A DNA stretch of 64,000 bases from Bugula neritina (Eukaryota; Animalia; Bryozoa). The notes under the pieces are model-generated. The model was not told the DNA's origin. It did not search any database and was given only the letters and a program-made list of their open reading frames with translations. This document shows positions 45,636 through 54,800 of the stretch, piece by piece. Location: assembly GCA_964035545.1 (NCBI GenBank), contig OZ037771.1:3049628-3113627 (forward strand). The letters are read 5' to 3'. Position 1 is the first letter of the stretch, and each line of letters begins with the position of its first letter. The position numbers and the translations under genes were made by a program.

Positions 45636-48600
45636 ATGCAGAATGTATTGATTCCACTTTATTGGGGTGAGTATAGAGCACCTGAACAATAGTGTCAAAC
45701 CAGCAGTGCGTGTCATTCATGGCATTCTCTGCAAGGTGATCTCATTGTTTATATACCCATAGAGCATGCATCATGATTATATAATGTAAATTACCTTCCT
45801 GTATAAGAAGGTTCCCACAGTTTCCATTTTTACTCAAAAACAATTCAAACATTTAGGTTATAGTGAGAAATGTGAGAAAATAGCAGTTAAGGCCTATACT
45901 AACTAAGTTTAAATTCTATAACTGCTTGTATTGATATCAATAAGGACAACATAGATGAATATCTATGACGAAGAAATATCTTTAAAAAAAATTGATAGAC
46001 TAAATTAAATTTCACGAAGCTCTTATTTTGAGCTTTTAATTGGAAGTTAAAATTAAAAATACTAATTTTTTCATTTATGTTTACATAATTTAGCGAAACA
46101 TATTAGTAAGCAAAATGACCAACTATTCATAGTAGACAAGTGTTTGCTGCTTATAATTTACAAATATAGCTAAAATACAGTGCTCAGTAATTCCTAGTGC
46201 ATTCTTAAATTAATATTTTTAATTCTGGTACTGTCACTAGGTTAGCCTAGGGCCACACGGCGCGTATTTTCGCATGCGAAAATTGAAATCACAAGTAGCA
46301 AAGGTGTCCACTGTAGCGTCAGTGATGCGTGATAAATAAAACTTTCATTTTTAAATCGCACTCGCTTTCAATAAAACGCAATTTACTGGAATGTAGCACT
46401 AAAATAAAGAAGTTGGGCTCGCTGAATAACTATCAGCCAATTAGGTGACGACGACAGAGACGATTCGCACTTGCGTTGAGAATGCAGAGCGACAAGTGCG
46501 AAGGTTTCTCAACGCGCACAGTGGACACCTTTGCTACTTGTGATTTCAATTTTCGCATGCGAAAATACGCACCGTGTGGCCCTAGGCTTATTCAGTAAAA
46601 TTTAGTTGAATTAAAAGACTTACTTATTTTTAGAAATCACTTCATTGCATAATGATTAAGTACGCAGTGCAAATATTGCAGCTATTCTCTCAACCTGTCT
46701 TGGAATTATCTCAAAACTCTAGCAGTATTTCTTCTCAGACACACTTATTAAAACCCTGTTGCAGGTTTGATTTTACAAGCATTGTTAAAGCAAGGGGAGG
46801 CAAACCCTGATGCCAAGAGGTTGTTCCAGGACTTATTGATAAAGAATAACTACAACAAGTTGATTCGGCCAGTAGCCAACAATAATGACACTCTGACAGT
46901 GAAGTTGGGTTTGAGGTTGTCTCAGCTAATAGGCATTGTGAGTAGCAGGTTTACGTACTTTTCTTAATTTGTAAATTGCATGAGTTATATTATGTAATAT
47001 CAGTCATGTTTTTGTAATGCAATTTGACATTGAATTATGTTTATAATACTACTTGGAAAGATTTTGAGTAAAATTGCAATGAAAGTTATTAATACATAAT
47101 AATAATTATATATTTAATAGTTATATAAAATATTATACTTTCTTGAATTATTGTGCATATAGCATAAATGGTATTTATAATAAAGCCTAGCTAACATATT
47201 CTAACTATATTTTACTACATAAGTGAAGTTTTCAACACAAATTGCCATGCACTATTATATAAGCTATAACTATATATTTTCTATTCTGATATATAGCTGG
47301 ATCGAGCAGTAAACAGGGTTCAGCACAATTAGTTTTGTTTTTTAATGTCATTTTTTCACTCTAGGATGAGAAAAACCAAATTATGACAACCAACGTATGG
47401 CTGAGCCAGGTGAGGAAATATTTCTGTCTTTTCCAGTTTATACTCACATGAATGATTATTATAAAGCACACAAAGCCACTAATATAATACAGCTGTACTT
47501 GTACAAACAATAATATATTGAGTTGAGCATATTGTAGTATATAATATATAGTATATACAAGTATACCTACTATTCTAAAAGAGTACATGTAACTTTATAC
47601 ACAAAATACACATATGCCTGCACCACCTTTAGATTTTAGTTATACCCCTGAAGGCTGAGCATATTGTTAATTACATTAGTCAGCCATTGTATAAATCTCC
47701 TCCCTAACCTTAAAAGAATGGGAAGATTTGAATCTGAAATGGGACCCAGCAGAATATGGTAATGTGCAAGTATTGTATGTCCCTTCAGAAGATATTTGGC
47801 TTCCTGATATAGTATTATATAATAAGTGAGTTTGATCTTAGCACCCCACATTTCAGTTTCAACATATATTTGAAGCAGTGAAGCCTTAACCATCACCACC
47901 GTGTAGATTGTGAGTGTCGGTTTGAAAACAATTTTCTTAAAGTTTTGAACAAACTTTTACATTATTAGAAGACGATATATTTTTATGCTTGCAATAATTA
48001 TTATACACCTGAAGCTATTTGTATTTCTGGGTGTTTATCTTGCACTCCCGCACACATTCAGTTGCAAATCATGCTTATTGTTAGGAGTGGGAAGATTTTC
48101 ATTTTATTTGGGACCCTAAAGATTACGGAGGTGTTGATTTGTTATATGTTCCATCGGAAGATGTTTGGACACCTGATATTGTCCTTTACAACAAGTAAGA
48201 GTTATGTGCACTTGTCCTTGGAATACTTTGTGAAGCAACAGCATGTTATTCTTTTCTTTCATGTGTATATACTAGAGATGATCTATGAACTTTAACCCTT
48301 TGGTGTATACAGGTTAAGCTAAGAAGTAAAAATTAATCGAAGCCTGTGTTCTAAATAAAAAAAATATAATAAAATAGATTATGCTCTCCCAAGAATTGCA
48401 GCTTACATTCTACATTTAAGAAGCTTAGACTATTGAAATTTTTGACTACGAACACCTAATTGCAGTCAGCAGTTAATTTTTTATTTGCATGTTGCAGTAA
48501 GATTTTGGTTTTGTTGGCCTAATTTTGAATAACTTTAGTAAATTCTTGAGTTGAGAAAAACATTTTCAACAATGTCAGCCCAAGTTAAGGTTATTAATTT

Positions 48601-51433
48601 GGATGAATTTCCAAAAATCTGCTTCTATGTATTCAAAGAGATGTTTTATGTAGTCAAATAACTGAGAGGGGGACAGCAAAGCAAAAGTGGATAAACCATA
48701 TTGTTCTGTTGTATAGCACTAGGCACTCAGCTAAAGTAAACTGTATTATATACACTCAAGGATGCCAATATTCTGTTTAGCTTGTGGTTTTAGTACTTTT
48801 GATTTTAAGTTTGTGGTGCTGCAACGTCTTTTTCTACAATCTTCTACAGAATTTACTCAAAAGACTGTTGCACTTCCATCGTAGTATAGCTAATGTCCTA
48901 CTGTTTGCAGTGCAGATGGGAACTATCAAGTAACCCTTATGACCAAAGCTACTCTCCACTCCAATGGAAGGGTGTTCTGGGAGCCACCCGCCATTTACAA
49001 AAGCTCCTGTACCATAGACGTAGAGTTCTTTCCTTTTGATGAGCAAACATGTGGCATGAAGTTTGGTTCATGGACTTATGATGGCATTAAGGTAAAGATG
49101 AACTAACGTGTATCTTTTACTTGCCTAATTGATAAGCGCATTAACATATGTTGTAATTATAGTGAAAATATGATGGGGAAACCCGCAGCATGAAAGTTTT
49201 TAGGTTCAATCACCTTTTTATCAACAATTATTTATTAGCTCATCAAAATTCAATTAGAACTAGCAGTTTGTTTATTGAAAACTGTAAAAAATTTATTTTA
49301 CTTCAATTAACTAAAAACAATTCACCAGTGGAAAAATAAGAATAAATGTTTTTATACGTTTTTTAAAACTCAAAGCAGAAAAGTAAAGCTTTGCATTTGA
49401 ATAAACGATTCTCTGCATTAACTCAGGTTGATTTAAAGCATAAAGACCAGGCAGATGTTTCTGGGGAAGTTCACATTCCAAAGGCTATAGACATGTCAGG
49501 CTATTACAGATCATTTATATGGGACGTTATGGCCGTGCCCGCAAAGAGAAGTGAAGTTACGTACCCATGCTGTCCACAGTATTACCCAGACGTGACATTC
49601 AAAATAACAATCAGACGAAAGACCCTATTCTACACCGTGAATCTCATAATACCATGCGTCGCTATCTCCTTCTTGACAGTGTTTGTATTTTATCTACCAT
49701 CAGATTCGGGAGAGAAAATAACTCTATGTATCTCCATTTTACTTTCGCTAACTGTGTTCTTCCTTCTATTGGCTGATCTAATACCTCCGACCTCCCTAGT
49801 TGTACCGCTGATTGGTAAATATTTGCTATTCACTATGATCCTGGTGACACTGTCCGTAATTATCACTGTCATAGTCTTGAACATTCACAACCGCACCTAC
49901 GCGACACACACTATGCCACCGTGGCTCAGGTGCGTAGCTCTAGAGATATTACCCACAATTCTGTTTATGCAAAAACTTAAACTAAGGTCAGCGATGAAAG
50001 TGAAAAAGAAACTAGATGTTGAGTCTCCGAAAATTAGGAACAGGTAAATAATTGTCAAGTATACTAAATCATTGTGGCTTGAAAATTTCCCAGTGAATTC
50101 AATTATTAAATGAATGTTAAAGTGTTTTGGGCAAGAGCTAATCTCACCGTTTTAATCCTATTGCGGTAAACGGAAGCAACAGCTAAAATAAAAGTAGAAG
50201 GATATTTCATTTTTTATTAGCTAAATTTTTATAAGTTATCACTCAAAAATGATCGAAAATATAATATAAACTATATAAGTAGCATAGGTTATTATAAAAC
50301 TTGTAGATCCTTTTCTTTAAATTTGATCATTTTCATAAACAGAGTAAATGGGGCTTCTGAGGCAAGGAAATTGCTCATCTCCCCAACAAAGGAATCGGTT
50401 AGGTCTGACATTGCTGGCCCGTGTTCACGAGATTCTCATGCGGGACTCAGGGTGTCTTCTACTGACGTCCCAACCCCGAAACTAAGGAAAAGAAAGTTGC
50501 CCCCAGAAGTTGAAAGAGCTTTGGAAGGCGTCCAACATATTGCAAACCATATAAAAGAAGATATTGACTATGAACAAGTTAGTTATTATAGTCATGTTAG
50601 ATATCTTTTAGTGAACTGTAACATTGTGTTAATTTGATTTAGAAAAACTGCCTAGAAATGTATAATTTGGAAATGCTGTACATATAAAACTGGAGTTATC
50701 AGCCTTGTGTAGAAAGCTGTTCATGTAGTTTGGAGTTGTCGGTACATCATGATAGACTAAGACTCGGCCTCATGATTTACTGCTTATTCTCCTGCATATT
50801 TCATCAAATGCACAACTGCAAATGTATTCCTTTGAAATTATTTGAACTTTGAGTAATTGTCTAAAATATTACAGTCAGAATTAAAACTGAATTAGTCTTA
50901 TTTGTATTGTAACTATGCAACTATGTTAACCTAACCTTCTATTTTTTCCAAGCAATTAGATTCTTAAAGAATAATTTAAACCTCAGTATTTCAACTAAAA
51001 TTTTGTTTAAATTTCATGATCGCCCAGTAAGCTACTACACACTGTTTTAATAGACAAAATGGACTTTGAATTAATTATTAAAAGTTATAAAATGGAGAAC
51101 AACATTTGGCATAAAAATCTTCGGCTCAAATTTTTATTAAAAATAAGTATTGTATGCTTAGTTGAAATTCACTCCGCTATCATAAGATGTGCATCTCTAT
51201 AAAAATAACATTGCAGATGAAAAACATATAATTAAAATTCCCTTAACAATGAAAATTATAAAAATAAATATTTCTTCCTTCAGATACAAGAAGAGTGGAA
51301 ATTCATGGCTATGGTTATAGACAGGTTGTTTTTATGGCTCTTCACTACAGCTTGCCTGGTTGGCACATTTGGAATTATACTACAAGCACCTACACTGTAT
51401 GATGGTGCTAAACCTATGGATGCCGGGATATAG
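45636..51433 (+). CDS. Nicotinic acetylcholine receptor alpha subunit (cation-selective type); exons 45636-45666, 46765-46937, 47365-47409, [47716-47825 or 48085-48194], 48911-49091, 49427-50043, 50343-50577, 51284-51433
   Basis: Signal peptide [23 protein letters not shown] then NPDAKRL; [12 protein letters not shown]; WxPDIVLYNNADG; Cys-loop [15 protein letters not shown]; GSWTYDG; loop C YPCC vicinal cysteines; M1 [11 protein letters not shown]; M2 [21 protein letters not shown]; M4 [16 protein letters not shown]. Confidence 0.97.
46245..46587. mobile_element. 343-bp PIF/Harbinger (Tourist-like) MITE in the first coding intron of the nAChR gene
   Basis: 70-bp TIRs (46245-46314 / 46518-46587) with one mismatch; TTA target duplication at 46242-46244 and 46588-46590; GC-rich relative to flanks. 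Confidence 0.92.
47716..47825 (+). other. nAChR alternative exon 4a (110 nt): [36 protein letters not shown](N)
   Basis: Paralogous to 48085-48194, same length and end phase, GTGAGT donor; the in-frame start is preceded by AA, not AG. Confidence 0.8.
48085..48194 (+). other. nAChR alternative exon 4b (110 nt): [36 protein letters not shown](N)
   Basis: Canonical TAG acceptor and GTAAGA donor; phases 0/2 join exons 3 and 5 in frame. Confidence 0.92.
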
Positions 51434-51864
51434 GACAGTAACTGAGGCTACAGATAATTATCTATCAACAAGAAATAAGGCTACAACTAGTTTAAAAAAT
51501 TGTACAATTAGTTGACTATTCAGAAAGATTACTAAAAAATTACTTTAAAACAATAATTATAGATAAATTAATTTCAACATTTCTCAGACTTATTTTTTAA
51601 AATATAAAACTGTACATATACTTTTCACATATACTATTGAGTTTTGGTGATGTCATGCCATTCATACCAAAATGTTATCAAATTCAATCATTAGAAATTT
51701 TAATATCATTCTATAAAAATTATAATATAATGTATAATAAACTATTTTTCAATATATAAATATTTCTAAACTAAAACATGTAGCACCAACTTGGCATTAA
51801 CACAGAGAGAAGATAACTTCAAGATTGTCTGTATTTTCATTCTAACTTCCACGACAGGCGGCTG

Positions 51865-54800
51865 TTAGAGTGAAAACTTCACCAACAGCAGATCTTCGTC
51901 TGTACCCCTTGCAACCCGCCCTCTATCAAACGTTTGAACGGAGCAGTAGCACGGCCCTACAAACAGGAAACAATCTCTTCTATCAGCCAAGTCTTACTTC
52001 TACTGCTTCTATACAATAGGTTATTTCAAAACACCAAATTGCAACAATTACCCAGCTCTGTATAATCCGCTTTAAGCAACATCGAAATCTTACTGTTACT
52101 TCATGAAATACTACGAGGTTGAGAAATTTGTATAGCAGGTAACATGCTAATACAACACAGAGATGGTGTTAGTCAGGAACACATGCTATCCTGCTTTTAG
52201 TTTTAGCTGACATTGCTAGTTTCGTATTATTTTACAATCTGCAGTGACAACTTGTTACATAATTACCGGAACTACGGGATGGATTGTGGAAGACGACCTC
52301 ATCATTTGCCAGATTTATTTTCGTCACAAGTATGAAATGACCTAAAATAAATTGAACAGAAATCTATGGTCAAAGGTTGTAAAGAAACTGTGATGATATG
52401 CAGGTTTTATTTAATGAAAAAAGTGGAATCAGCTACGAGATAAAGAAGAAAGAGAGTAAAACGCATTCAATTAACTGCTTACCTTGGTAACTCCCAAAGG
52501 TGAAACAGAGCTTGGAGCATAAACTCGAACAAGTCTGCAACACAGTTTGAGTAATCAATGTCATATTTCGAATATAATTTGAATGCAATTTAAGTAATAA
52601 TAACATTAAAACAATGCAAATAACAGCTAGCATATAGGAAGATACTTAATTAGTTGAAACGGATTTCAACTTTGATTGAGTTTCAAAATTTTCACAGATG
52701 TATACAGTTGCTGCATAATTAATGCCATTTCATAATTAAAATTTATCATTTGCATCGATAGTGCAGCATATGACTCTGGAATGTGTTCTCACTGTGGCTT
52801 TTGGTTTACTACAGTCTTATCACTAAACTAAATAATTTTAAACATGCCTTAATATTATTTTTACAGCAGTTTTATCATAATTATCCAGAATGAGAAAACC
52901 GTCAGATGCAAAAAAAGTAGTAAGTATACTAACTAAATGCTTGTTTTTAGATTTGTCTATTCACTGTAAGCTCTGAACGTACAAAAACATTAGCACTACA
53001 GCCTTATTGGATAGTAGAAAACAGCATCCACACTATTCTAATACTCTTCAAATAAAGTATGCTTTAAATTAAAACATAATAAAATGTAAAGCTTGCAGCT
53101 ACAGCTAACAGGAGCATAATTGCACAAGAGAAAACTACTCTTAAAAACATGATATTATGTAGCTCAACTAATAGATTTATATACCTGCATGACATCATGA
53201 CAACAGGTACAGCCCATGAGATTCCAGTCGACTAGGGCTATGAGCAAACACCCACCAACTTCCAATAACTCAGAAACTCTGGCTATAGTCAAGTGCCTAT
53301 GTAAGAAGAAGAAAACTCCAAAAATAGTGAAAACAAAACTACTAATGTAACCAGCATTCTTCACATTCAACTGTTAGACAAGGAGAGAGGAGCAGAAAGT
53401 TGAACCCAACAAATATCAGTTTAGAGGAAGCATTGACAACCACGCATTACGCTAATAGTCAGCAGTAGTAGCTTTGATATATAATAGCACATATTATATA
53501 GCACATATATAGCACAATGCTAGATAGAAATGCTTCATCCAGGCACTTGAAAGCACACGGCAGCAAATACTTAGAAAGTCAGCGAGCAAGCTGATACTAC
53601 TGATCATCACCTACATGGCCGTACTCTCGTATCTGTGCTGCTTAGCTGTACATTCACCTTTATACAAGTATACTGTCTAACTTATGACCATTAGTCTAAC
53701 ATTCAACATGAGCAGTGAATAGTAAGCTGCTAGTAGTAATAGTAGATTTACAAGATAACTTACTCTTGTATGCAAGAAATACCACACTGCAGCGCTTCTA
53801 TGAACAGATTGTCTACTCGCTCTTTGTCATTGCGAAAATTGGACTTATAGAATGGCTGCAAAATTACCAGACATAATTTATTATATTTAAATACAACATT
53901 GACATATATTTTTGCACTAAAACTATATATTTAAATATAATATTATCATATATGATTAAACTATAAATATATATAAATACAATCTCAAAATATATATTTA
54001 TACACATAACATAAACATAATTTCATTTTTAGCATTCCAAATCGAGTAAGAAATTTGACTAGCAGAATGCTGCATTTATAATATCAGTTCAATATCCTGC
54101 ATGATAAACTGTTTTGCAGTTTAAATAAAACTCAATCTTGTATTTGACTTGCACTATCATAATGAATGTACAATGTTTAGCAAACTAAAGAACATACCAA
54201 GGCAGCGTGACCAGTATCAACCTCACAACTCAGAGTATACAAGGTGCATTGGAAACCATATTTCGACAGTATGCAGGCCAAATCAATTGTGTATACACTA
54301 AAATATAAGTCTGAGGTTTACATATCCTTACAAATATCTGAAATGAATACTACAGCATATTTATAATTCAACAAATACTTCAACTTATATTTTTCTTATA
54401 AAACTTGTAAATATTTACATATAAATAACGCAAAATCTTCATGATTAACTATCGTAGAACATTATATATATATATATACATTAGTAATGTGCCTGATGAT
54501 TGCTGTAAGGAGCACAAAACTAATAGTTGCACAAAAAATGTAAAATCAACATCAACAGGTTAAATTTTTTTCATTAATTATATATGTAAATAATAATAAA
54601 CTATATTATTTATTTGATAAAAAACATTACCTGTGATAAAGTCTGATGTCCTTCATATACTTCGGCATCAAATCTAAATCTTTATTTAGAGATCTACAAC
54701 AATTAATGAAATTGTTTATTTAAAAATAAACAGAAGTTAAGAATATTTTATTACAATGATACTAAGATACAGTAAATAGAGAATAGTGAGATAGATAACA

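Follow-up and report, generated by a model that had tools for sequence, protein, structure and literature searches.

How is an exon spliced when its reading frame asks for an intron that ends in AA, while the only AG nearby lies one base too far downstream? This question is raised by exon 4a of a receptor gene in a 64,000-nucleotide stretch of DNA from Bugula neritina, which is called the window here (G000:C7:3049628-3113627; 216-Mb genome). The gene encodes a nicotinic acetylcholine receptor subunit and occupies approximately 46.7-51.4 kb of the window on the plus strand. Matches to the Pfam domain Neur_chan_LBD are found in the window at 47698-47850, 48079-48198, 48909-49112 and 49421-49624. 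Homologues of exon 6 recovered by a word-based protein search carry both PF02931 and PF02932, and several of them are named nicotinic acetylcholine receptor. Exon 6 also contains a YPCC pair, which is the mark of alpha-type subunits. Judged by its sequence, the gene product is an alpha-type nicotinic acetylcholine receptor subunit.

The exons of this gene are listed in Table 1, together with the elements around the acceptor of exon 4a. Protein searches were run exon by exon rather than with a joined spliced model. An RNA contig from a relative (X3 record 17) covers 46764-46933, which corresponds to exon 2, and a second, spliced contig from the same relative (X3 record 18) confirms the junction between exons 5 and 6 (49089 to 49425). 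The 15-residue peptide encoded by exon 3 is the same in two homologous genes (L001 and L002). On the minus strand, an antisense open reading frame of 87 codons with a GTG start (window 47636-47899) spans all of exon 4a and its acceptor. This frame is probably a chance by-product of codon bias in the sense exon.

Table 1. Exons of the receptor gene and sequence elements at the exon 4a acceptor. Positions are those of the window; a slash marks a splice boundary.
Feature	Position	Strand	Description
Exon 2	46765..46937	+	N-terminal ligand-binding domain; ends ...LSQLIGI, phase 0; acceptor ttgcag/, donor /gtgagt; ORF fragment
Exon 3	47365..47409	+	45 nt, phase 0 at both ends; U2-type donor CAG/gtgagg
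In-frame TAA	47692..47694	+	Blocks a longer exon 4a from an upstream AG; ORF runs 47695-47826
Pyrimidine-rich tract	47696..47711	+	Contains branch-point-like CTAAC at 47704-47708
Acceptor anomaly	47714..47716	+	AA (47714-15) at the intron end required by the frame; AG (47715-16) straddles the boundary one base downstream
Exon 4a, in-frame reading	47716..47825	+	110 nt, loop-A exon, 36 codons + 2 nt; donor AA/gtgagt
TGA stop	47729..47731	+	Reached after four codons if AG 47715-16 is used (109-nt exon)
Exon 4b, tandem alternative copy	48085..48194	+	110 nt; canonical acceptor ttgttag/G; donor AA/gtaaga
Exon 5 (Cys-loop)	48911..49089	+	ORF; X3 record 18 joins its end to 49425
Exon 6 (loop C with YPCC, TM1-TM3)	49425..50028, 3' end approximate	+	X3 record 18; Pfam homologues
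Loop exon	near 50340-50606	+	
Last coding exon (TM4) and stop	51266..51433, start approximate	+	X3 record 22 covers 51273-51605

The initial annotation of this DNA had claimed that exon 4a is in frame only with a non-canonical AA acceptor, and its description of the letters agrees with ours. Translation of 47716-47825 yields an open loop-A exon of 36 codons, a frame that needs the exon to start at G47716 with AA directly before it. Across the acceptor the genome reads AAAAGAATGG, a short AAAA run followed by G, and the in-frame mRNA form with a 110-nt exon would consist of ...CTGAGCCAG joined straight to GAATGGGAAG. The sole adjacent AG, at 47715-16, yields a frameshifted exon of 109 nt that begins AAT GGG AAG ATT TGA. 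When the sequence was read directly, no AG dinucleotide was found between 47690 and 47714, that at 47715-16 being the first.

Extension of exon 4a in the upstream direction is closed by the in-frame TAA at 47692-94, again as the initial annotation had stated. Two upstream starts were considered and rejected: a start after AG 47678-79 is in frame but meets this TAA, and a start after CAG 47681-83 is out of frame. A shifted donor of exon 3 offers no rescue, as no alternative GT exists. Inclusion of 4a and 4b together (219 nt) likewise leaves the frame wrong, with a TGA at the fifth codon. All other splicing signals appear in good order. A branch-point-like CTAAC sits close to the acceptor within a pyrimidine-rich run, the frame of exon 4a is open and free of stops and indels, and the donor at 47825/47826 resembles the consensus.

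The first explanation to consider is that the letters themselves are wrong. An 11-kb contig assembled independently from the raw reads of run X1 agrees with the window letter for letter over 46565-52200, without differences or gaps. The word depth of this contig (record 7) is 142.6, where single-copy DNA in X1 has approximately 143. Because a read-derived contig of this depth matches the window exactly, a slip of the assembly is unlikely. The initial annotation had named a null allele, a poison exon and an assembly error that dropped one G as alternatives; this was the right set to consider, but the X1 contig makes the last of them unlikely. At the acceptor itself the contig shows AA/G as well, and the assembly holds no AG/GAA haplotype. 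A search of the genome assembly revealed no alternative haplotype copy of 47560-47900, and the bin at 47679-47875 has no second contig in X1.

X1 is possibly the same sample as the source of the assembly, or even the assembly's own data set, and contigs can drop a minor allele. The 4a acceptor may be heterozygous, with a second allele hidden in this way. We nevertheless consider it very unlikely that the true genome, or another haplotype, reads AG/G instead of AAAAGAATGG. Against such an artefact or unseen allele stand the independent k-mer assembly, which gives the same letters in an unbroken contig at full single-copy depth, and the lack of any alternative contig in the bin or haplotig in the assembly. 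Moreover, an AAAA run followed by G is short and not the kind of long homopolymer that is prone to error.

Other sequencing runs contain this locus in diverged form. Runs X2-X4, which are labelled 'symbiont metagenome', carry a version that is 5-10% diverged. Run X5 shares the organism label of X1, yet differs from it by approximately 7-10% in introns and 3% in exons, and the same is true of the 2016 'symbiont metagenome' runs. This divergence of X5 and the 2016 runs from X1 (window 46700-52200) suggests that cryptic sibling lineages exist under one name. A 135-nt deletion at 48569-48705 is common to X2 and X5. Just upstream of exon 2, at 46300-46590, we also observed a very high-copy element with a word depth of 1e5-1e6 in 4/4 runs, as compared to approximately 143 for single-copy DNA in X1. 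Many opposite-strand joints connect 46300-46331 to 46518-46539 in this element, which suggests a foldback or MITE-like repeat common to the sibling lineages.

Is the AA at the 4a acceptor a peculiarity of this exon or a feature of the receptor family? Homologous receptor genes of other animals were taken from metagenome and Logan contigs, and their exon-4 copies were located by tblastn. AG/G is present in 7/7 of these copies, which read AG/GA(A/G)TGG or AG/GATTGG; the genes are homologues rather than strict orthologues, with no more than 75% DNA identity to anything in this genome. Both members of a tandem exon-4 pair in another animal (L002) are among the AG/G copies. Within this genome we collected 30 distinct exon-4 homologues including 4a. 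Among the other 29, an intron occupies this position in 25 and ends in AG in every one (25/25). The remaining 4/29 are without an intron here; exons 3 and 4 are fused, and the coding sequence reads through. The 4a acceptor is a lone outlier among homologous acceptors, which is more than chance.

The closest sister gene (G000:C5:4809296-4812069; C5:4811497, loci L023 and L027) shares its exon layout with this gene and is 77% identical to it in exon 6. Both acceptors of its tandem exon-4 pair (C5:4809773-4809880 and C5:4810201-4810308) are canonical, and the first copy of this pair shares 81% protein identity with 4a. The residues VPAE..WKPD are found in its second copy and also in that of the metagenome locus L002. 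A degenerate pattern for a 10-residue peptide of 4a found no match in the metagenome contigs, and the best identity in the word-based protein search with exon 6 was 83%, with no close relative in that collection. Taken together, the sequence comparison points to a derived loss of a canonical AG/G site at exon 4a.

The arrangement of 4a and 4b is the layout expected of either/or alternative exons. As in documented mutually exclusive exons, the two are adjacent homologues of the same length and phase. Such exons also have functional splice sites in each copy; those of 4b are canonical, whereas 4a has no in-frame AG. The two copies share 69% amino-acid identity at equal size (110 nt). Comparison of 4a with 4b, with the sister-gene copies and with the copies of the C4 cluster gave dN values of 0.16-0.22, and dS is saturated (undefined or >1.5). 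If anything, 4a is nearer to the family consensus than 4b. By this measure exon 4a has long been under purifying selection. Since the exon is constrained, carries neither stop nor indel and retains a consensus donor, the defect in its acceptor should be either young or compensated. And since selection has acted on 4a as a coding exon through most of its past, a lesion would probably be young.

The most probable reading of this case is that the acceptor of one of the two alternative exons has suffered an ordinary, probably recent, lesion. More specifically, we consider it fairly likely that the last base of the intron changed recently and shifted the AG by +1, that 4a-containing mRNAs are frameshifted, and that 4b carries the function. 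The ancestral sequence would have been ...AG/GAATGG, and either a G-to-A substitution at the last intron base or the loss of one G would have turned it into ...AA/GAATGG. The polarity of this change is derived from paralogues and more distant homologues rather than from direct orthologues. At present the intron closes with A and the exon opens with G; the two letters together make a new AG one base downstream (47715-16), the signature of a shifted-AG lesion. The spliceosome would be expected to take this shifted AG, and an mRNA containing 4a would then be missing the first exon base, shift its frame and meet the TGA after four codons. Such an mRNA would probably be degraded. The 4a isoform would thereby be lost or unproductive in this haplotype, and the receptor would be supplied by 4b. 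A point against the lesion is that a still-functional exon would likewise show a perfect exon 4a, a good pyrimidine tract and a good donor.

The shift leaves both the pyrimidine tract and the surrounding aaag as they were, and therefore recognition of 4a should persist. Persisting recognition leaves room for a secondary role of 4a as a poison exon. It is a different proposition that such a role is maintained, that is, that the 109-nt frameshifting form is a regulated unproductive choice by which some cells reduce their receptor mRNA. The tract, the AG at 47715-16 and the consensus donor all look usable for this purpose, and inclusion would lead to an immediate stop. Nevertheless, we judge a maintained poison exon to be rather unlikely. 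Conservation at the protein level would be unneeded in such an exon, but 4a has preserved a complete receptor-like reading frame, and its dN is far lower than its dS. Its homologues, whether from the sister gene or from other animals, are normal exons read in frame, and nothing indicates that the poison state is old or conserved.

RNA contigs from the relative bear on the use of the two exons. In X3, the contig depth is 6.6 in the 4a bin, 5.4 in the next intron bin and 20.4 in the 4b bin. Contig depth is an unreliable measure, and the lower depth over 4a than over 4b gives a weak hint in favor of the lesion. X3 record 17 holds exon 2, exon 3 and approximately 27 more bases, and its exon-3 piece appears to run approximately 14 nt past 47409. 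The first 14 bases of intron 3 (47410-47423) are identical to the start of 4a (47716-47729) at 9/14 positions and to the start of 4b (48085-48098) at 10/14. Because the intron start resembles both exons over these 14 nt, the extension in record 17 does not reveal the following exon. For the same reason, an aligner can extend a spliced read into the intron and so hide the junction.

As opposed to being lost, exon 4a could be used in frame. This would be the case if A47715 were converted to inosine or if AA were accepted directly, so that the G lost from the genome is restored at the RNA level; we regard such a restoration as quite improbable. In the editing version, which the initial annotation had put forward as a possible gate on exon choice, an ADAR would deaminate A47715 and the resulting AI at 47714-15 would be read as AG. 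As an editing-created site requires, the genome has AA where AG is needed. Deamination of A47715 would also abolish the out-of-frame AG at 47715-16 and would amount to a restorative edit of a G-to-A substitution. ADARs accept a 5' A and a 3' G, and the AAG context of A47715 suits them. Exon 4a is intact, receptor genes of the family are documented as targets of editing in insects (PMC8505678), and conversion of AA to AI has a precedent in ADAR2, as far as the account in PMC4761006 goes.

Deaminase domains of the ADAR type are encoded at several loci of this genome: matches to A_deamin (PF02137) above the cut-off were found at C7:3339268-3341075, C4:23456181-23460472, C2:5150941-5154403 and C4:15633938-15634417. 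With these genes present, the case against editing does not turn on a missing enzyme. The first of them lies on the contig of the window, approximately 240 kb farther downstream.

What speaks against editing is the double-stranded substrate, which we did not find. In the minimum-energy fold of a 301-nt context A47715 is unpaired and lies in a predicted 15-nt loop, and a z of -0.87 relative to shuffled sequences indicates no extra stability. The predicted pairing probability is 0.27 at A47715 and approximately 0 at 47711-14. Inverted repeats were searched in 46900-48950, approximately 1 kb around the site, and none of the best (longest) 25 of 54 pairs covers 47700-47730. A search from exon 2 to exon 5 for a duplex partner of 47695-47735 gave a best energy of -20.4 kcal/mol, compared to a shuffle mean of -22.1, and 24/30 shuffles were equal or better. 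With the site predicted to be unpaired, no complementary sequence and no excess folding, the proposal that editing gates the choice of 4a gained no structural support, and we consider it very improbable.

The second way to use 4a in frame is to accept AA as the 3' splice site directly, either by the major spliceosome or in a U12-type intron, where the distance from the branch site would fix the 3' end. The U12 branch consensus TCCTTAAC is expected approximately 8-20 nt from the 3' end. TCCCTAAC (47701-08) matches this consensus at 7/8 bases and lies 8-9 nt upstream of the needed junction. U12-type introns tolerate unusual 3' dinucleotides. The genome contains a full-length U12 snRNA gene (G000:C2:4146490-4146640, 108 bits), and from the presence of this gene we infer that the minor spliceosome exists in this animal. 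However, the only possible partner donor, that of exon 3, is U2-type GTGAGG rather than RTATCCTY. A search of the plus strand between 46700 and 47716, that is from exon 2 to 4a, found no match to RTATCCTY, and a U12-type intron before 4a was rejected on account of this donor. U2-type GT...AA introns are extremely rare, an AG one base away would compete, and the homologous introns are all GT-AG. The suggestion in the initial annotation that a non-canonical 3' site is used thus finds no support in the donor or in the homologous introns, and direct use of AA seems very improbable to us. Editing and a true AA site taken jointly leave in-frame use of 4a improbable.

What would follow from these readings differs. 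If the lesion is true, this locus is a natural isoform-specific knockout, in which a single base has silenced one form of the ligand-binding site of a neuronal receptor and the gene remains functional. It would then serve mainly as a warning for annotation, as gene predictors will drop 4a or invent an AA acceptor, and possibly as a marker for comparing the cryptic lineages of this animal. Only if the 110-nt junction does exist in mRNA would the locus stand out as an example of splicing that is non-canonical or depends on editing. Should the editing or AA reading be true, the choice between two versions of the ligand-binding site would be gated by editing, and, outside vertebrates and insects, this acceptor would be the first in a receptor gene to depend on editing for productive splicing.

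Each of these readings can be compared to a known system. In Drosophila, nAChR alpha4 has an alternative exon 4, and alpha6 has mutually exclusive exons 3a/3b and 8a-c (PMC8505678; PMC1919356). Like these exons, 4a and 4b are tandem duplicates that agree in length and phase and encode part of the N-terminal ligand-binding domain. Unlike them, they belong to an animal of a different phylum, are candidates for either/or use by their layout, and include one copy, 4a, that has no usable in-frame acceptor. The duplication of 4a/4b is probably independent of those in Drosophila.

The transcript of ADAR2 (ADARB1) is edited by its own product: in the account given in PMC4761006 (Rueter et al. 1999), conversion of AA to AI creates a 3' splice site, adds 47 nt and breaks the frame, and the edited site lies in a defined duplex. 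The 4a acceptor resembles this case, as there outlined, in having an intronic AA exactly where AG is needed. It differs in that a duplex is not predicted at 4a and in that editing would restore the frame rather than break it. With U12-type introns that have non-AG/AC 3' ends, the 4a intron shares a branch-site-like TCCCTAAC very near the 3' end and an unusual terminal dinucleotide. In contrast to those introns, its partner donor is GTGAGG.

The closest parallels to the preferred reading, a lesion of the acceptor, come from human genes. In CHD7 c.5535-1G>A and ATM c.4437-1G>A, the affected exon starts with G and splicing moves one base downstream to the newly formed AG; the exon thereby loses its first base, and the frame is shifted (PMC6637606). 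Exon 4a shows the same configuration, with A as the last intron base, G as the first exon base and an AG that straddles the old boundary, and its expected product would likewise be frameshifted by the loss of the first exon base. In contrast to these human variants, the state at 4a belongs to the reference genome of a wild invertebrate, and its consequence for the mRNA is deduced rather than sequenced. Also unlike CHD7 and ATM, only one of two alternative exons is affected, and a productive isoform is retained.
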